Origin: Botryllus schlosseri
Lineage: Eukaryota
Assembly (NCBI GenBank): GCA_051294905.1
Contig: CM119373.1
Coordinates: 26,288,001 to 26,352,000, forward strand
DNA length: 64,000 nucleotides
Direction of reading: 5' to 3'
In this document: piece by piece, positions 1-50,008 of the stretch
How the letters are laid out: each line of letters opens with the position of its first letter
How positions within the stretch are numbered: position 1 is the stretch's first letter
Position numbers and translations under genes: made by a program
The notes under the pieces: generated by a model
The model's database searches: none
Told to the model about the DNA's origin: nothing
The model's input: the letters and a program-made list of their open reading frames with translations, nothing else

Positions 1-3000
1 AAATACTCCCTTACCGTTTCGAACTTCAATTCATTTCTCAGGAACTTGCTCATCTGAGCAGAAACAACAGCAGCATTCAACTCCAAACGCGGGATAGATA
101 CCTGTCGCTTCAGAGGGGCAACTCTGGCCTTGCCGATTACCAACGAAACATGGGCATTTCCTCTTTCGTTGACCAAGCGTACGTAAGAGCATTGACCATA
201 AGCATACGAGCTGCTGTCCGAAAAATGATGATATTCAACAAGCACGATCTTACCAAAACTCGGCGGCTTGAAACAGCGGTCAATGCGCAAAGACTCGATC
301 GATGATAACGTTGAACACCACGCAACCCATCGGCGCTTCAGCTCGTCTGGTACTTCATCATCCCAGTCCGTCCCAGCTTTGCAAAGAGATTGCAGAATGA
401 GTTTCCCTTCCAGCACCACTGGCGATATGAAACCCAACGGATCATATACGGAGTTGACAAAGGATAAGATGGAACGCCTGTTCACCGCACGATCGGACAA
501 TTTGATGTTGAATCTGAAACAATCATTCTTAACATCCCAAATTAGCCCCAATGTTCGAGTGCTAGGCACGATATCATCACATAGGTTTATTTCGCGATAC
601 CCAGTCGCTCTATCTTCCGTTGGAATAGAATTCATTATACCTCTGCACTATTGGAAACGAATTTGCAAAGTCGCAACTTGAAACTAGCGCACAGTGCTTT
701 GCTGCTTTTAACCAAACTCACGATTTCTTCAACAGAGTCCTTCGACGTAATACCGTCATCCATGTAGAAGTCGTCGCGTATAAAATTAGCCGAGTCGGGA
801 CCAAACTGACCTTCTCCGTCATCAGCCGCCCGCTTCAATCCAAAGTTCGCACAGCCTGGTGAACTTTTTGCTCCAAACAAATGAACCTTCATCCGGTATT
901 CCACCAGAGGTCCATTCCTGATGTCGTGATCTTGGAACCATAGGAATCTTAGAAAATCACGATACTGCTGTGATACAATAAACTGATGGAACATGGCTTC
1001 TATATCTGTGCACAACGCCACGTGTCCTTTCCGAAACCTGCAAAGAACTCCCAGCATCTCATTCAGCAGTATTGGGCCAGATAACAAAACATCATTCAGG
1101 GAAATTGAGCAATATGGAGCAGAACAATCGAACACGACTCTGATTTTATCCGGTTTATGCGGGTGGTAAACTCCCAAGTGTGGTATGTAATTCACTTTGC
1201 CATTTTCGATATTTCGGTCAGTTTCTGGTACCACCTCAGCCCAATTGTTAATGACATTTTCCATGAAGGTCACATAGTCTGTGGAATACTTCTCATCTTT
1301 CAGAAGGCGCTTTCTAAGTTGACCGATTCGCTTTACTGCTAGCGGCTTGTTATTTGGTAACGTTGCCGTACTGCTTTTCAAGGGTAAAGGCATTTCCAAA
1401 TGACCATCGCATCTTGGAAATGTGCCTTATTTGAGAATTTCGACGAACCTACGGTCTTCTATTGACATTGGAATATGCTTACCATTGTGTTCCGCAAATT
1501 CAATCTCAAACATGGTTCCTACTGATTGAGGTGTTAATACTTCTTTACATTTCGAACCGAACACAAGCTTGTCATCTAGGGCCGTAGGTCGAATTAACGT
1601 TTTGTGACAAATGACGGAATCCTTAGCAACGTCCAGACACATTGGACCTACAACTCCCCAACCTAATATGGTACGCACGCCATATGGTTCATTGTCCCCT
1701 CCAGCCACGACGTCTCTCGGCCGCAATGCTTTCGGTACATCTGTGCCTAGCAATACTGAAACATCCAACTTAGAGTCGTACGGGACAAGCTGATCACATA
1801 CCTCAGTGAGATGTGCCCACTCCTTGCAGACTTTACGGTTGGGAATCTGGGTGCGACAGACTGGAATCTCCTTTTCCGTGAAAAGTGTCGCCACATCAAC
1901 TCTTTCTTTCTTGTCATAGCTCAAGATCTCCAAACCCTTGACTTTCTTGCAAGGCGTGTTGATGTCTCTCCCGGCAAGAGTTGTCAACGATATCGCTGTA
2001 TCCGTTCCATCTAGGTCAAGCTTATCAAACAGTTCGTCTGAGATAAAACTGGAGTTGGAATGGTCGTCAAGGACGCAATAACAAAGTACTTCACATCTCG
2101 CATTATGTTTTGATCTAACCCAAACAGGTACAATGAGCGCGCTGCTTATTCCTCTACCATTTGAATCGCATATCTGCGTACATAGAGAAGTTGAGTTACT
2201 AACTTCCTTTTCATGATCTGTGTCAAGATGAAGGCATGTAGGATGCCTTTTGTCACATTTGGAACATTTTGCTCGCTTGGTACAGGATCTTGAAATGTGA
2301 GTTTTACCAGTTTTGTTGCCACAGCCGAAACACAGATAAAGAGCATAAAATACCTTTTTACGCTCCGCCATGGGTTTACCTTGCAATTTAGTGCAGTCAG
2401 CAATATGATGATCTCCTTCACAATGCAAACAACTTGCCTCCTCTACCTTGAACGCGAAAGAAGTTGTTTTCGGTTTCGGTTAGCTCTTGATGTTTCCACT
2501 GTCTTGCACTTCAAATTCAGGCTGATTCTTGATATCGGATTGGTCCTTAACAAATCTGACAATGTTAACAAATGGCGGGTAACTGTCGTCGAGTTAACCG
2601 CTTGTATTTGTGAACTTCATCCATCCACCGGTTCTTCAAATACAGTGGTAGTTTGTTGACCACAGCCGGTATTTGACAAGACGCATAGTCGAGCGTTTTC
2701 AAGTCCGTATTTCGCTCCTTGTTAGCTGAAACTTGCAACAGGAAATCAGAAAATTCACGAAGGTCATGCTTACTTTTGACGGGCTTCCACGCTTTCAGCT
2801 CATTGATGAAGGCGCTTCCAATCGACGTGCTACCACCGTATCTGAGCTTCAGCTCTCTCTTTGCAGCGAAGCACGATTCCTCGGTATTATTTAGGAAGTA
2901 ACCATCGACAACCTTCAAGGGACCGTCACCTAAATATTGCCGTAACAAATTCATTTTTTCGTTAGTATTTTGAACTCTGGACTCTACCAACGCCTCAAAC

Positions 3001-4614
3001 GATGCTTCCCATTTCGGAAAATCCAAAGGGTTACCAGTAAACTTCCACAGTCGAATGCTTGGAAGTCTTTGAGCTGATATCATCTCCCTCATCATTGACA
3101 GAAGTAACTCCTCGTTGCGTTGGAGACCATCGAGAGTACCGCGAGCATTTGAGTTCGATGCTGTGATATTTGGAGCTACGCCGGATCTACTCACGGGATC
3201 ACGCGGTATCTGCATGTGCATTACCTGCAAACATTGGTACAAAGTTATCGGAATAGACGTTAAGCCTATTAGTTCCTGGTGGTGCAGACGGTGCTTGAGC
3301 GATGTGTCCTGCGATGGTATTGATTGAATGTTCGGCGCGTGAATAATCAGCCACGCGAGATTCATTGACCACCACACGAGTACTAAATTGTGGTCGGTCA
3401 CGAACATCAACTGTATCTTTAACAGGATTCATCTCTGGACCTGTTGGGTGTTCGTCAACGGCGATGCCTTTTGTTTGATCGTGACGTGAAACAGCTGGTG
3501 GCTCCATGTAGGAAGACGGCTGACGCGAGAGATCCTCTAACTCTTCCATGAGACCGAATGGATTTTCCACTTTCTCCACTTGCCTGCACTCTCTTACGAT
3601 TGCTTCCTGCGTAGCTATCTGTTTCTTCGTTTCAAGAGCATCCCGCTCAAGCTTCATGGTGGTTTCATGCAACGCCCTCTTCTTCTCAAGCTCGGATTCT
3701 TCTTGTTTGAAAGCTAAACCCGCTTTAAGCACGGCCGCCTTTTCCTTGGCGTCGCGCATCTTTTGAATATGAGATTTGACACTCCCGGCCTTCGACGATC
3801 TTCCGGATGACTTGGTACGACTCGATCGACTAGAACACGAGCGTTTATCGGCTCTTATTTCGCGAAGACGTTGTGACACTTGTACCTTCGTTTCTTTTAT
3901 TCCAGCTTCCAGACGTTGAAATTCTTCTTCAAATAGGACATACTCGACGTCTGGAAGAACATCTTTCACTACTTCCAGAATACTTCTCAAGCTGTCCCTG
4001 TGTTGAAGCACCAGTTTCAAGGAACCCCCTACTTCACTTTCATCACTCGAGATTATTGCGATCTCGGAGCATTTTTCCATTCTCCGGCTCAAATGTTCAG
4101 TACTTTCTGAATATCTTGCCTTTATTTCTTTTGTCTTGCTGCGCGTCGCCACCTGCCGCTTTTTCACTACATCAGACGGTCCTTCACCGTCATGTTCGTG
4201 GTCATTGCGGTCGTTGCGCGGTACATTAGCATCATCGGTGGACGTTGCGCCCACGTGCGCGGTTCCACGGGCTTTGTCGGCGTCATCAGCGGACGTTGCA
4301 TCGACATGCGCGGGGCAATGGGCTACATCGGATGCCTTTGCATCAGCGGACGTTACATCCACATGTGCGGGGCGATGGGCTTCATCGGATGCCTTTGCAT
4401 CAGCGGACGTTACATCCACATGCGTGGTTCCATGAGATTTATCGGCGTCATCAGCGGACGTTTCACCCACAAGCGCTGTTCTATGGACTTGATCAGAAGC
4501 CTTTGCACCAGCGGACTTTGCATCCACATGCACGGTTCCATGGGCGTCATCGGATGCCTTAACATCATGAGTACCCATCTCGTGATTGGCTGGCGTGTTT
4601 TCTTTCGAAGCCAT
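1..4614 (-). pseudogene. BEL/Pao gag-pol polyprotein pseudogene
   Basis: Track ORFs 3199-4614, 2565-3410, 1427-2428 and 635-1399 join into one polyprotein via frameshifts near 3200, 2575 and 635 and in-frame TAA stops near 2480 and 1427; the frame below 635 is open to position 1. Confidence 0.9.
4227..4563 (-). repeat. Coding tandem repeat in Gag N-terminus, six units of 57/57/51/57/57/51 bp
   Basis: CA(T/C)C(A/G)G(C/T)GGAC anchor recurs at 4233, 4284, 4341, 4398, 4449 and 4506; protein units such as DAKASDEAHRPAHVDVTSA (19 aa) and DDADKSHGTTHVDVTSA (17 aa). Confidence 0.9.
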
Positions 4615-20598: not shown

Positions 20599-21907
20599 GT
20601 CTATTTACTCTGTTTGGATACTTCTTACGCAATAACGAGCAAAACCAATGCTTCTGACGTAATAATGAGCGGTGGCGTTTGAAAACCAGACGTTTCTGCT
20701 ATCACTAACACGGTAAAATCACTGAGCTATATATCTTCCTCTTTCACGAATGTTAAGTTTATGTCATAGCCCTCTGGACAAATAAAAAGTAATCGTTCTT
20801 TCACAAAGAAATCGATTAGATATGGGAAGTAGTCGATTACGATTACTTTGGAATTTTTTCGAATGTAATCGATTGCGATTACGATTAATTGAAAATGCTG
20901 TAATCGTCGTAATCGATTACGATTACTAATCGCGATTACCCCATGTCTGCTATCCATATTCTTGATTGGTAAGTGGAATTATAGCACCGCCGTAAAATGT
21001 AGGTGTGTAGCACAACGATATGTTACGCCGGTTACTTCAGAAGTACAGCGCGACAATTACATTTGATTAATATCAGTGATTATAACTTCTAAGCTTCTTA
21101 CGATTAGTTTCACTATCACAGGCGAGACATCGCCCATCTGTGCCTCATCTGTGCCATACCTAGCCCTTTATTTCTGAATAACAGATGTGAAAATTCCGTG
21201 ATTTTGGGAATAAAAATGTTCAAAATCTAGTCATTCATAAACATCGATAAGAAAATACCAATATTAATAATTGAAGGTTTCACAATTTCCTTCATTCACC
21301 CCTGAGGACATATGAGGCACTGTCGCATTTGTCTCCCCTAACTCAACGACACTGACGTATCACACCCCGCCGTGTGTTGGCTATGTACTGCTGCGGTGAC
21401 AAAGTTTGGCTCCGACTACGCATGTGGGCATAAACATATGGTGCACACTATGAAAACCACATATTAGTGCTACGAATACGTGACGAATTTTCAATTGTGA
21501 CGTAACAGTTGATTGACATGTATGGCTCTTTGGGAGGTACAATTGCAAATATTGGTTCAAGATGGCTCTTCGGTCGAAAAAGGTTCCCGACCCCTGCTAT
21601 ACGCCCTATCGGATGTGTGTCAGTGTGTTATTGCGCGACAAGTTTTAAACTCACGGCAGGTCAAAGCTGATACAAAAATATGGAAGTTTATACACTGATA
21701 AACAGTAACGAGATTGATTCTAAACCTACGTCTTCGATTAGAGTATCATTCGCGTTTTTGTTCTATTGTTAGTCATATTGAGCGACAGACAATATATCAA
21801 GAAGTATGTTATTACCATGTGGGCCTATGCATGTAATATTTTCATGTAACTACATGATGTGATGACTTTAGCTGATAGCGGTGCATTCCAATTTCACAGC
21901 TTAGAAT

Positions 21908-24601
21908 ATGACTTCGTTCGGCATTGTTGACTTTATTGCTAATAACTCTCTAGATGAAGTTGGAGCGACTCCTGTCTGGGAAAAATTTCGGAAGCATTTC
22001 TATGCTGTCGGTGTTGGCATTTCCTTGTTTGCACTCTATTTTACTCTTGGAATCCATGTCGAGTGTGCACCAGCGTATTCAAACGGAACCGTCATAAAAA
22101 TAGATTTGTATTCGCGGCATGTCAACGAATATTGTGGGAACAACGATCAGTTGATTGTATTCAGGTATTCTGGATGCATGCTTGTTGGCATGAATGCCAT
22201 TATTCTTTTGGCTGCTTCGTATTGGCTTTATCTGCCGAATGCGATTAAACCACTTCGAACCTTCTCCAAGATACGAGGATTAGTCAACGATATCCATTTG
22301 CCATGGGAGGAGTTGAAGCAGCTCATGGCAACTCCAATGACGGCAGAGGAATTATCGACGACCCCCAACGAGCCAACTGATAAGTTATTGAAACAGAAAA
22401 AAATACGCGAAATAATTAAACTGCTGCCATCATTTAAGGAGGAGAAAGATCACAATCATCAGCAAACAGCCGATTCTAGCAGCAGTTGCTGTTGCAGATC
22501 CCCCAAATGTCCCTGTAAGACACTTGTAGCGTCCTACCTATTTAGAAACTGTGTTCTAGGAGTTCTATTCATCCTCGCTATTGCCGGAATAGTATGTCTC
22601 ACAATACTCATGCTCCAAACTGGCTACACATTTCCCTGCACATACGATTTGACAAGTGACGGCAAGAATTACATTTGTGCAGTCGGTGGCACATCAGTCG
22701 CAATAGTATGCACCATCGTTTGTGTACCTCTACTCGTATGTCAATTGATAGCGATCGGCTACGGATCTGCACAAGCGATCAAAATTATATTGAACGAGAA
22801 TCGCAAGGACGAAAAGCGAAAGAAAATCAACTATTCATCAGTTAGGTTGATTGTCAGATTCTGCAAAAGTTCCCAGTCGCCACGTTCTGGTATTTCAAGT
22901 AGTTTTATTGAATTCTTTTTTTCTAAAGAATTCGAAGAGACTGTTAATCGTAACGTAAATATATCAGAAATCCGGTCAGACGATGAATTGGGTAAGCTAT
23001 CACGCGCCCTCTATATTGACGAAGACCCCTTACGCGACCTAACATCCGATATGAGAGAATATGAGACTACGCAGTTTCGCGGTATCGTTGATATAACCAA
23101 GTACAGCCTAAAACAATATTATAAACTTGCTGAGATGCTGGCTAAACACCAGCTATGGGAGACTTTCGTGTTTCTGCTAGGTAATATCAATGAAGATTTT
23201 CAGAAGTGTGAAGAGGAAGACATAAACGATTTCTCAAGGTTGATCATCAATTTTGATTCCATTGCAACGAAATATCATGATGGAAAGAAGTTATCGAATG
23301 AGTTTTACGAAACAGGATCGTGCTCTCAGAATTTTGACAGTAATAGCATTTTGTATTATGCAATACATAACGGAAACATGGACAATTTCGACGTTGCGTT
23401 GTTTCTTCTGTCTTGTTTCAAACCGATCAACCCTTACGTACATTATTACGTTCCCCAGAAAAATAACCAAAATAGTGTACCAGCATTAGCATACATTAAG
23501 TCACTACCGCCAACCTATACAAAATGCGCGAATTATCCAAAGCTGGAAACTGAAATAAATAAATGCAATACTGCTACGCATCCGGAATATGAGTGTCAAA
23601 AGGCACTCAAAGACACACTGGCGGTATACAAGGAAAAAGCGCAAGTTATGCAGTCTATTATCATAGGTATATTGTCAAGGCGGAAATTTCGTGATTGGGA
23701 TGAGACTGCATCCGAATTCTTGAAATTGGCGGTAGAAAAAGGACACCATGAAATCGAATTAGCTCTTTTAAAAGCATTTTTCACAGGTAATCCGTTGAAA
23801 TATCTATGTAAGAAGCATCGCGGAGTGAAAAAATCTATTCCGAGCGACCGCTGTATAGAGAAGATATTCACCGACTTCAATTACGAACTTGACGATTGCA
23901 AATATTTGGTTGCGCATCTGGCAGAAACTCATTCCTGGTCACTGCTCGTAGGATTACTGAATCATACGAATACTAGATGTGACGAGATGACACCTGAGCA
24001 GAAAGAGTTCTTCAGAAAACTAAAAATAGATCTTCAACTACCCCAACAAAATTCGAATTCAAACGGGTGTGGTGAGAATATCGTATGGGCGGCTCTGGAA
24101 CAAAACCGACGCCGGGACGGCATCCGATTTACTGTCACGAACTTCCTTCTGGATGTTTCTGAACCGCAAATTCTCTACGTCATTAAGGCTGGTTCAGATA
24201 CGAAAAGACTGAGTAAAGACCCGAGGAGTAATCCACAAAATACGCAAGAAGACAGCAAGAAGTTCAAAGATGCCCTTGCAAAATTCGAATTGACATATCT
24301 GCTTCACCGTTATCAGAACAACATTGAGAAAGAAGATTTAAAGAAGATTTTAGCTGACGTGCCGATTCGCGAATGGAATGACAATGTGCGCAAGCTTGCT
24401 GAGCTTGCATCAAGTAACGAAGATTGGGAATTCTTGATTGCCATACTCAAGACGCATATTGCGGAAAACATTTTGAAAGGAAGCCATATCGACATCAATC
24501 CCACTAACGTGAAAGTTATTTGGGGTTTGATAAAGGCCGAGCGAGACCCATTTCTAAATGTATGTGATATTATTCTAGAATATTTCAAGCCACCGAAATA
24601 A
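21908..24601 (+). CDS. 897-aa four-TM LRRC8/pannexin-like channel protein with a non-LRR repeated helical (ankyrin-like) C-terminus
   Basis: Uninterrupted ORF. Hydrophobic segments at aa ~31-49, 87-107, 206-236 and 263-285; Cys pairs in both predicted extracellular loops (C53 VECAP, C76 VNEYC, C244 FPCTYD, C257 YICAVG); TPVWEKF resembles LRRC8 KPWWDVF and YWLYLP resembles FWFKFP; acceptor-like TTTCACAG ends 8 nt before the ATG. Confidence 0.85.
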   Translation: MTSFGIVDFIANNSLDEVGATPVWEKFRKHFYAVGVGISLFALYFTLGIHVECAPAYSNGTVIKIDLYSRHVNEYCGNNDQLIVFRYSGCMLVGMNAIILLAASYWLYLPNAIKPLRTFSKIRGLVNDIHLPWEELKQLMATPMTAEELSTTPNEPTDKLLKQKKIREIIKLLPSFKEEKDHNHQQTADSSSSCCCRSPKCPCKTLVASYLFRNCVLGVLFILAIAGIVCLTILMLQTGYTFPCTYDLTSDGKNYICAVGGTSVAIVCTIVCVPLLVCQLIAIGYGSAQAIKIILNENRKDEKRKKINYSSVRLIVRFCKSSQSPRSGISSSFIEFFFSKEFEETVNRNVNISEIRSDDELGKLSRALYIDEDPLRDLTSDMREYETTQFRGIVDITKYSLKQYYKLAEMLAKHQLWETFVFLLGNINEDFQKCEEEDINDFSRLIINFDSIATKYHDGKKLSNEFYETGSCSQNFDSNSILYYAIHNGNMDNFDVALFLLSCFKPINPYVHYYVPQKNNQNSVPALAYIKSLPPTYTKCANYPKLETEINKCNTATHPEYECQKALKDTLAVYKEKAQVMQSIIIGILSRRKFRDWDETASEFLKLAVEKGHHEIELALLKAFFTGNPLKYLCKKHRGVKKSIPSDRCIEKIFTDFNYELDDCKYLVAHLAETHSWSLLVGLLNHTNTRCDEMTPEQKEFFRKLKIDLQLPQQNSNSNGCGENIVWAALEQNRRRDGIRFTVTNFLLDVSEPQILYVIKAGSDTKRLSKDPRSNPQNTQEDSKKFKDALAKFELTYLLHRYQNNIEKEDLKKILADVPIREWNDNVRKLAELASSNEDWEFLIAILKTHIAENILKGSHIDINPTNVKVIWGLIKAERDPFLNVCDIILEYFKPPK

Positions 24602-36212: not shown

Positions 36213-38098
36213 CTTATTATTATTATTACAAACATGAGTGGTGCTTTTCGCCATTTATGGTCTTGTGCGCCACGGTCGTCAGGAAATTCAAATCAAGCAG
36301 TAACTAAATGAACTTATTACAACTTATCACGAACTCAGCGATGGCTGTGGACAATTGCGATGACGAGAGTATAGGTTGCGTATGGTGAACGGTATATGTA
36401 ACTGATTGCAATAGGTAATAAAAATGATCGATGAAAGTCGTATTTAATGCACGATATCAAAATGTGTTCGACTGTTTCGATGACATCGCATTCTTCGCAC
36501 ATCGGAGAGTCCGAGCAGCCGATTCTGAATAAATGGGATGCTACTCCACAGTGTCCTGACCGTAGTCGAAATATCAGGCGTTCGATATAGCGACTGCCGT
36601 TTTTCTCCGGTCCTGTGGTGAGTGTGCTGTGGAATTGCTTGTAGTGGGATTCCCGTTCATCGGCAGAGTATTCGCATTGCCAGATCTCTTGGGTAACTCT
36701 TTTCATTGCGGCTTTGGCGTCTGGCACGGTAATAATTGGAGTTTGGCTCGATTGATCTTGCGTTGACGAGCCTACTCGGGCTAATTCGTCTGCTTTTTCG
36801 TTACCTGGAATTCCTGCGTGTCCCGGAACCCAAAAAAATTCAACAGCGATACCGGTATCATGGATATGTTTAAATATTTCCAATATGGATACAATCACGT
36901 TATTTGATGGTCGGTTCAGAGGTCTATAAACCGTCGTTAATGCGGATAGGCAATCTGAGAAGATGACGTAAGTGTGGTTTCGCGTGCCGTGGTCGAGTAT
37001 CCAAAATAATGCATGTTGAATCGGCTTCAATTCCATTGTAAAGGCTGATGATATCGGTGAGCAGGTACGAGAGATTGCGATATCATGTACCGGAATATAT
37101 ACCCCGTAACCAGCGCGATTGGATTTTTGGAACCGTCTGTGTAGATTGCCACACTGCCCCCATATCGTTCAAACATGAAATCTAGGCATATCGATTTGAT
37201 GTTTTCCAGTATTTCGCATTCCGAAGTGTATTTAAGTAGATCCAGGTCTGCGACGGGAATCGGTATTGTCCATGGTGGTGTGGTTAACCACTGTTGTGTC
37301 CCAACTGTCACGCGAGTATATGCGATCGTGAAATGATGTTAAAAGCTTTAAAATTCGGTTTTGTGATGCAATATATTTCATGCCACGAGTCTTCTACTAC
37401 GTTAAGACAAGGATGTCGAGGCGGTTGTTGTCCAAGTAATTGGCATCGGTAATTCGTGCTTAGATACTTGTGTCGTATGTCTAAGGGCATTTCGCCGCAC
37501 GCTGCTTGCAATACCCAGGCGGGTGTGCTACGCATAGCTCAACAGCAGATCCGTAGCGCAGCGTTTTGTATCGTCTGGAGCCGCTGTAGGTGACATTTAG
37601 GAGCGAAATAATACGCGGGAAGTGCATAGTCAATAAGTGACCGGATAAACGTTCTGTACACGATCAGTAGAGTTTCTGATATGGTATATCTGTGAGGAGG
37701 AGGAGCACATTCAATCTCCTGCAGCATTTAGCACTTATTTCCTCAATATGATATTTATACGATAGATTGTTGTCAAATATAACCCTGAGAAATTTGAACT
37801 TTTCGGACACTACGACTGGTGTGTTATCAATCCGTAACGCAAGTTCCGGGAGCGAGCGCTTCTTAGTGAATTACATTGCTACGCTTTTGGATTTCGATAG
37901 TATGAAGCCCCATTGTAAACATTAGCGCTAGATTGCATCCAAGGACATTTGTACCTCTGAAATTAGCGATGTTACGTTGAGACCACTTTGCCATAAGACA
38001 CAATCATCCACGAAAAGAGAATTCTCTCAACGTATTACCGAGGTTAAGTCGTTGATCATCACTCTGAAGAGTAGAGGCGACGTGTTTGGACCCTGAGT
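36213..38098 (-). mobile_element. 5'-truncated I-group (I/Nimb-like) LINE: RT end, RNase H, CCHC, (TAA)n tail
   Basis: SPLLFRVMINDL and LFVDDCVLW (RT), YRTFIRSLIDYA, LQTIQNAALRIC, PPWTIP, IYTDGSK, IFSDCLSAL, WVPGHAGIPGNEKADELAR, CEECDVIETVEHILISC; TTATTATTATTATT tail at ~36213; several frameshifts. Confidence 0.92.
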
Positions 38099-49419: not shown

Positions 49420-50008
49420 GGATCTCAGCAACGATAGCTACCAATACCCAGTCTTTGCAGCGTGGATGGGCCCTCCCCTCCAAGTGGACTGCAGCCTTGA
49501 ACACATCTCCCGCCGACGACGAGATATTTTTCAGGATTATGTTTTGGACATACACGATCGTTCCAAAGCAATCTACACTGACGGCTCCAGGCTCTCATAC
49601 GGCACTGGCATAGCAATGTACGTCCCTGACGACGGAATTATTATCAACCAGCGATGCTCGGATCCATTCAAATCCAGCAGCGATCTAGAACTGCTGGCCA
49701 AAAAATTGGCCTTGAAGTATATAGTGGAGCACGGTGATGCCTGCAATTACACTATTCTTTCGGATTGCCTGAGTTGCGTTAAGGTTATCGGTAACTCTAG
49801 GCCGCAATCGCGTCAACACAAAATCCTGCGTGATATATTTTCGTTACTTGATCGAGCCAGCAACCTCGGCGTGAGTATCAAATTCGTCTGGATACCAGGG
49901 CATGCGGGAATTGCGGGAAATGTAATTGCAGACAAATATGCAAAAGAGGCGGCAAGCGATGAATCGTTTGGTCCGGACCCGATCTGGACCATCGAGTATG
50001 AAAACTAG
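49420..50008 (+). CDS. RNase H domain (I-group LINE type); predicted exon 2 of the ParB-like-RNase H fusion
   Basis: Acceptor CAATACTTTTTTCAG|G; 195 open codons; D (YTDGS), E (DLELLA), D (ILSDCLS), H (WIPGHAG) and D (GNVIADK) all retained; splice phase matches 45593. Confidence 0.75.

Follow-up and report, generated by a model that had tools for sequence, protein, structure and literature searches.

The LRRC8 proteins of vertebrates (LRRC8A-E), known as subunits of VRAC/SWELL1, an anion channel regulated by cell volume, combine a pannexin-like transmembrane (TM) pore region (PF12534) with a cytoplasmic domain of leucine-rich repeats (LRRs), and they share a superfamily fold with the pannexins (PANX1-3) and the innexins (PF00876). 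In this work we analysed a stretch of 64,000 nucleotides of Botryllus schlosseri DNA (contig CM119373.1, positions 26,288,001 to 26,352,000; hereafter the window), in which a single intronless open reading frame (ORF) at 21908-24601 on the + strand encodes a protein of 897 amino acids that joins an LRRC8-type pore domain to a tail of another kind. By analogy with its characterised relatives, the gene product probably assembles with other subunits into a large-pore membrane channel; within the pannexin/innexin superfamily it would stand on the LRRC8 branch, equipped with a new cytoplasmic regulatory domain.

The likeness to LRRC8A-E is extensive: the pore domains are homologs with a common fold, the N-terminus is of equal length, and the P-W-(W)-D/E motif, the four aligned cysteines, the long intracellular loop 1, the first helices after TM4, the single coding exon and the existence of multiple paralogs are all common to both. 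In contrast to LRRC8A-E, the present protein has no LRRs, and two modules of ~240 residues stand where vertebrate LRRC8 continues into ~15 LRRs; both are orphan and helical by prediction. Sequence identity is 13-16%, extracellular loop 1 is ~35 residues shorter than that of LRRC8A, and there are ~55 paralogs here versus five. Moreover, Asp66 aligns with the selectivity arginine R103 of LRRC8A, at a position that differs between family members and in a short loop where the alignment is uncertain. Because the LRR domain was searched for and is absent, the protein falls outside the LRRC8 family in its present definition.

The homology of the pore domain came to light only because a profile of paralogs replaced the single-sequence query; the 897-residue protein alone found no match in Pfam, in the PDB sequences or in a large protein database. 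The profile, built from 28 full-length paralogs and searched against the PDB, matched LRRC8D, LRRC8A and LRRC8C at E values from 3e-14 to 4e-9, the match spanning profile positions 20-307 and residues 20-394 of LRRC8A, which comprise TM1-TM4 and the first cytosolic helices. The same profile reached pannexin-3 at E 0.01 and pannexin-1 at ~0.5. Taken individually, 15 of the 28 paralogs matched PF12534 (best E 1.5e-10), and none of 38 family members matched the Pfam innexin family PF00876 at E <= 0.01.

Several of the residues that the family keeps align with those of LRRC8. Among the 28 paralogs the only invariant columns are C53, C76, C244, C257, M1, L15, P22, E25 and R213, with W24 nearly invariant. 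In the alignment of hidden Markov models that also placed Asp66, P22-x-W24-E25 falls on P22-W-W24-D25 of LRRC8A (within L20-K-P-W-W-D25) with identical residue numbers, and C53, C76, C244 and C257 fall on C54, C113, C295 and C310. A glycosylation sequon (N-x-T) at N59-G-T is kept in every member of the subgroup to which the gene belongs (group A, see below). A cluster of cysteines at residues 194-203, common to the nearest paralogs only and with no counterpart in the LRRC8 alignment, is a possible palmitoylation site.

The predicted fold leads to the same relatives. Four TM helices, spanning roughly residues 23-47, 80-108, 206-238 and 262-301, emerge both from hydropathy and from an AlphaFold2 model, and the model of residues 1-335, computed on the paralog alignment, has a mean predicted local distance difference test score (pLDDT) of 80 and a predicted template modelling score (pTM) of 0.76. 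In a Foldseek search of the PDB the top 50 matches were all LRRC8 (E ~1e-8, TM-score ~0.6). In an all-against-all structural alignment independent of Foldseek, LRRC8A stood alone in first place (Z 17.3, root mean square deviation 3.5 A over 268 residues, model 13-335 against LRRC8A 15-391), followed by pannexin-2 (13.6), INX-6 (12.7), pannexin-1 (12.5) and the connexins (~11). Pannexins and innexins thus share the superfamily fold, the topology and the two cysteines per outer loop, but they are more distant than LRRC8 by profile (E 0.01-0.5 versus 1e-14) and by structure (Z 12.5-13.6 versus 17.3). Because profile, PF12534, the alignment of cysteines and motif, and fold all point the same way, the pore domain is an LRRC8-type member of the pannexin superfamily, and we regard the homology of residues 1-345 with the LRRC8 pore domain as practically certain.

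A preliminary description of this DNA had proposed an LRRC8/pannexin-like N-terminus with four TM segments and two cysteines in each extracellular loop. The present data bear out these proposals, including the pairs C53/C76 and C244/C257, and the LRRC8 profile and fold speak against a different four-TM family. Its further ideas of a sensor domain and of a ligand-gated or immune pore are speculative. All eight motifs quoted there are present in the protein: TPVWEKF at 21-27, YWLYLP at 105-110, ASYLFR at 208-213, FPCTYD at 242-247, YICA at 255-258, SILYYAIHNGNMDNFDVALFLL at 480-501, FLKLAVEKGHHEIELALL at 604-621 and NIVWAALEQ at 724-732. The gene and the parts of its product lie in the window as follows (evidence in brackets).

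21908..24601, + strand: complete coding sequence, 897 codons and stop (ORF list, upstream stop, conservation of M1, contig colinearity)
21908..21973, + strand: cytosolic N-terminal segment, residues 1-22, up to the P22-x-W24-E25 motif; putative counterpart of the pore-lining LRRC8 N-terminus (conservation, LRRC8A alignment)
21974..22048, + strand: TM1, residues 23-47 (model helix 23-47 with pLDDT ~90; hydropathy)
22049..22144, + strand: extracellular loop 1, residues 48-79, with C53, C76 and the N59-G-T sequon (invariant cysteines, alignment to LRRC8A)
22145..22231, + strand: TM2, residues 80-108 (model helix 80-108; W106 nearly invariant)
22232..22522, + strand: intracellular loop 1, residues 109-205, part helical and part disordered (model helices 110-182; pLDDT <50 at 181-197)
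22487-22516, + strand: juxtamembrane cysteine cluster C-C-C-x4-C-x-C, residues 194-203, just before TM3 (alignment)
22523..22621, + strand: TM3, residues 206-238, with R213 invariant and Y210 near-invariant (alignment, model)
22622..22690, + strand: extracellular loop 2, residues 239-261, forming a beta hairpin that holds C244 and C257 (model strands 241-246 and 253-259)
22691..22810, + strand: TM4, residues 262-301, with Q279 nearly invariant (model helix 262-301)
22811..22942, + strand: post-TM4 cytosolic helices, residues 302-345, the final LRRC8-homologous stretch (to about residue 394 of LRRC8A), just ahead of the entry point of the LRRs in LRRC8 (profile and structural alignments)
23021..23743, + strand: C-terminal module, copy 1, residues 372-612, a predicted mostly alpha-helical orphan domain (HHalign; common to group A paralogs and to P0002, a protein from an unrelated public run)
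23786..24598, + strand: C-terminal module, copy 2, residues 627-838, and C-terminal extension to residue 897 (HHalign; BLAST high-scoring segment pair to P0002)

The tail behind the pore domain is a tandem duplication: residues 372-612 and 627-838 align over 199 columns with an HHalign probability of 98.2% (E 4.5e-14). Each unit measures ~240 residues and is mostly alpha-helical with a few short strands in the AlphaFold2 model of the tail (pLDDT 64, pTM 0.46). Relatives are few. The tail is common only to five close paralogs, which make up group A with the query; in profile-profile comparison both copies also match the tail of a second subgroup, group C (probability 94% and 79%), and the tail of group B, the largest, has no detectable relation to that of group A. 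A tail profile searched against 1.84 billion representative proteins gave 4 matches, all unnamed singletons from raw assemblies, and against the PDB sequences it gave none. As judged from its sequence, the ~240-residue module is a new domain, nearly without relatives in public data.

Two known repeat classes were considered for this tail. A divergent LRR domain was rejected, in agreement with the preliminary description, which had seen no leucine-rich repeats in these ~550 residues: no Pfam LRR family matched the query or 37 other members, the core LRR motif is absent from the whole query, a relaxed form of the pattern turns up a single time between residues 336 and 897, where shuffled sequences have it 2.5 +/- 1.4 times, the prediction is helical, and no LRR protein is among the fold matches of the tail. 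The ankyrin-like label that the same description had given to several helical hairpins fared differently; the quoted hairpin sequences are real, and the label found no support. The query has a single Ank_3 match at E 0.2-0.3, which was not seen in the five paralogs, in P0001 or in P0002, and ankyrin is absent from the PDB profile search of the tail. Fold searches with the low-confidence tail model did not rise above noise (best Z 6.8, TM-score <0.25); they returned ARM, HEAT, TOG and designed-repeat proteins and a small number of ankyrins, with three ankyrin entries at Z 5.0-5.1 amid many unrelated helical proteins, and a search of a protein atlas with the whole protein gave one lone ankyrin lead with a score of 0.78, under the trust level. 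The tail does resemble the ARM, HEAT and ankyrin solenoids in being mostly helical by prediction, in its hairpin-like pairs and in that generic solenoids top the fold lists; it differs from them in its noise-level scores, in the want of any profile match and in a unit of ~240 residues with short strands, compared with repeats of 33-47 residues. The ankyrin reading was therefore also rejected, as unsupported, since its Ank_3 match is confined to the query and the solenoid matches are at noise level. Judged by sequence and model together, the tail is a duplicated, lineage-restricted and mostly alpha-helical module, and it does not appear to be an ankyrin domain.

Proteins with a PF12534 region and no full LRR domain are already present in databases. 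The best fold matches in the AlphaFold Database, ahead of pannexins and innexins, are UniProt entries of 339-619 residues automatically named as LRRC8 pannexin-like TM region domain-containing or LRRC8B-like proteins (clusters A0A0C2NBR2, A0A7D9HTE8 and A0A6P8J671; E 4.5e-8 to 3.4e-5, TM-score 0.64-0.69 by query, identity 11-14%). They are LRR-less, because they are too short for a full LRR domain, and their accession ranges tentatively suggest cnidarian organisms. A literature search found no paper describing such proteins.

The gene belongs to a large family. The pore-domain profile found 75 matches in the 495-Mb genome, of which ~55 have the whole domain within an open frame (300-1064 residues) and ~15 are interrupted or fragmentary; nearly all members are single-exon. 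Tandem arrays hold most of them, on contig C3 at 12.2-12.9, 18.1, 23.5-24.05, 26.3-26.7, 29.7-29.9 and 35.0 Mb, and further members lie on C2, C4, C6, C7, C12, C13, C14 and C15. At least three tail types, unrelated to one another, occur. In a maximum-likelihood tree of 40 pore domains the tail classes correspond to clades, group A with support of 100/99 and groups B and C each on one side of a branch. Some members consist of the pore only, with ~300-335 residues and no cytoplasmic tail: L043 and L045 (C3:29.68-29.91 Mb), L044 (C3:26467648-26468538) and L040 (C13:24064925-24065824). LRRs are absent from ten divergent members, among them members of 716-769 residues and thus of LRRC8-like size. 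A canonical LRRC8 was not found in the genome by a PF12534 scan, which gave two weak matches, both of them members of this family. As far as could be found, such a tunicate radiation of ~55 genes with an LRRC8-type pore and other tails is apparently undescribed.

The nearest paralog (L002, 799-3801; C3:26352852-26355671, +; ~1000 residues) is a tandem neighbour in the same orientation, placed ~43 kb downstream of the gene and 852 nt beyond the end of the window. It is 83% identical to the query over residues 1-198 and ~56% beyond, and it carries an insertion of ~50 residues in intracellular loop 1. Three other members deserve mention in their own right. L005 (C3:26695819-26698158), of group A, has a low-complexity insertion of ~70 residues rich in Pro, Ser and Ala between the halves of module 1. 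L003 and L006 (C3:26552618 and 26557124) are near-identical tandem duplicates 4.5 kb apart, with a ratio of nonsynonymous to synonymous substitution rates (dN/dS) of 0.83; L006 diverges and ends early (503 versus 612 residues), and it looks like a copy heading to decay.

The reading frame itself is complete. An in-frame stop lies 6 nt 5' of the ATG, M1 is invariant among the 28 paralogs and the numbering up to P22 is identical with that of LRRC8A; the nearest AATAAA is 230 nt 3' of the stop codon. Contigs from public runs are colinear with the ORF and have no splice joint inside it. The gene is solitary, with no other long ORF within ~17 kb on either side, in surroundings of few ORFs and ~40% GC as in animal genomes.

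Conservation beyond this genome comes from P0002, a protein of 935 residues that shares 27% identity with the query and runs colinear with it from residue 1 through both modules, with a secondary BLAST segment pairing query 618-865 with P0002 322-594. In the tree P0002 nests in group A, adjoining the subclade at 12.5-12.9 Mb (support 96/84). Since even the best match that this genome offers to it has no more than 30% identity, P0002 derives from another species, and the two-module architecture that it keeps is therefore old and maintained. Within the genome, comparison with the nearest paralog gives a dN/dS of 0.39 for the TM domain and of 0.68 for the tail, and the allelic variants listed in the ORF comprise 20 synonymous and 18 nonsynonymous changes, many of them in the disordered loop; allelic divergence in the public runs is 2-4%. 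The dN/dS values and the ratio of the variants thus indicate that the pore is under purifying selection and that the tail evolves fast. An apparent stop variant, K177*, was rejected as an artefact: it arises when two adjacent variants, which lie on the same contigs, are scored one at a time.

Positive evidence that the gene is transcribed is weak. In the one run on record as RNA, of which ~6% was sampled, a few reads fall over 21779-22369, with allelic variants as in other runs and no further mismatch; further runs that contain the sequence are only presumed to be RNA. Upstream of the gene, at 20794-20990, there is a short repeat with a tandem unit of ~64 nt (joints going back ~63-65 nt), whose summed contig depth is in the thousands in two public runs versus tens in the flanks, and to which reads of the RNA run map as well.

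Lineage markers of the genome fit a tunicate, the likely source. Matches to GH6 (PF01341) that pass the Pfam cut-off occur twice, 43 kb apart, at C9:15025585-15068854 on the - strand, in frames of 531-545 residues; GH6 is among animals a hallmark of tunicate cellulose synthase, and the two matches may be two cellulose-synthase-type genes. The missing canonical LRRC8 and the allelic divergence described above belong to the same set of markers. So do connexins, which occur only in tunicates and vertebrates and supply their gap junctions (PMC6391747), and for which the genome has many genes (74 exon matches).

If the protein works as its solved relatives do, its subunits would assemble as hexamers or heptamers, possibly heteromeric with paralogs as in LRRC8A-E. 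The N-termini would line the pore, with both N- and C-termini in the cytosol, and the outer loops would be stabilised by disulfides and glycosylated at N59. The tandem helical modules would hang below the pore in the cytoplasm, where they may do what the LRR domains do in VRAC, be it gating, regulation or the binding of partners. VRAC-like anion selectivity is not to be expected, because the equivalent of R103 is Asp66 and varies in the family.

Several points weigh against a regulated channel of this kind. The query alone stays below the Pfam threshold for PF12534. The short extracellular loop 1 and the unconserved R103 equivalent mean that pore properties cannot be transferred from LRRC8, and because the tail model is of low confidence, the role given to the tail is a matter of inference. 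The tail's dN/dS of 0.68 corresponds to weak constraint, and the evidence of expression is thin, with its few reads from one sampled RNA run. Oligomerisation drew no support from a three-copy complex prediction of the pore domain, which was run without the paralog alignment, gave a monomer pLDDT of ~43 and for its part weighs neither way on assembly.

Among other explanations, the protein might be a non-conducting scaffold or receptor, in which the LRRC8-type domain oligomerises or anchors and the varied tails are platforms for signalling interactions and not gates of a pore. Its tails are indeed the most variable part of the family, each type tracking a clade of pore domains as if partner binding diversifies, the selectivity arginine is not kept, and reviews have raised scaffold roles even for the LRR domains of LRRC8 (PMC6363415). 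We nevertheless consider a scaffold unlikely, as the hallmarks of the pore, including the P-x-W-E motif of the pore-lining segment, are strongly conserved in the 28 paralogs, dN/dS is lower in the TM domain than in the tail, and the characterised relatives that the searches by fold and by profile brought up, namely LRRC8, pannexin, innexin and connexin, are all channels.

It is less probable still that the ORF is open in a gene that is not, or no longer, functional, one of the copies that decay or can be spared where a family turns over by rapid birth and death. Such turnover would agree with the ~15 family copies with stops or fragments, with the dN/dS of 0.83 and the truncation in the L003/L006 pair, with the dN/dS of the tail and with the weak RNA evidence. 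Yet the frame of 897 codons is intact, dN/dS in the TM domain is 0.39, the allelic variants are ~1:1 nonsynonymous to synonymous versus the ~3:1 expected under neutrality, another species keeps the two-module architecture at 27% identity, and reads of the RNA run cover the 5' part of the ORF without unexplained mismatch. An innexin-like gap-junction subunit, docking to the neighbouring cell through short outer loops with two cysteines each, appears very improbable. The loops do resemble those of innexins, INX-6 is matched at Z 12.7, and a quick genome scan gave no PF00876 match, although control genomes were blank too, so that this is not proof of absence. Against a junctional role, gap junctions in tunicates and vertebrates are supplied by connexins, of which this genome has many (PMC6391747), and LRRC8, the closest relative, is not known as junctional. 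A large-pore channel subunit of the LRRC8 branch remains the reading that we favour.

Elsewhere in the window, four ORFs of 254-471 residues lie at 635-4614 on the - strand; the one at 2565-3410 has a DUF1759 domain, which is common in retroelement-like genes, and the rest have no Pfam match. This run of ORFs is probably a mobile-element remnant. RNase H domains occur in two separate ORFs, at 36335-37036 on the - strand (E 4.5e-8) and at 49466-50008 on the + strand (E 2.8e-13).

Tunicates are the sister group of vertebrates, and independent domain shuffling of the tail is plausible, the LRRs having been either gained in vertebrates or replaced in tunicates. The family suggests that this type of pore has a longer history, and a more modular one, than reviews allow. 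A wider suggestion, which we put forward tentatively and hold to be doubtful, is that the pore of LRRC8 type has long served as a modular chassis for which the vertebrate LRR fusion is one of several solutions, and that tunicates, without the LRR version or having replaced it, radiated it into ~55 genes with at least three unrelated cytoplasmic domains born in their own lineage. If true, this would overturn the textbook view of LRRC8-type channels as an LRR-defined vertebrate innovation, and these animals would possess many large-pore channels that differ in their gating and that might serve, for instance, in signalling of osmotic state, of metabolites or of self versus non-self. As natural domain swaps, these genes bear on how a cytoplasmic domain affects gating, on the date of the LRR fusion and on the function of the pore without LRRs.

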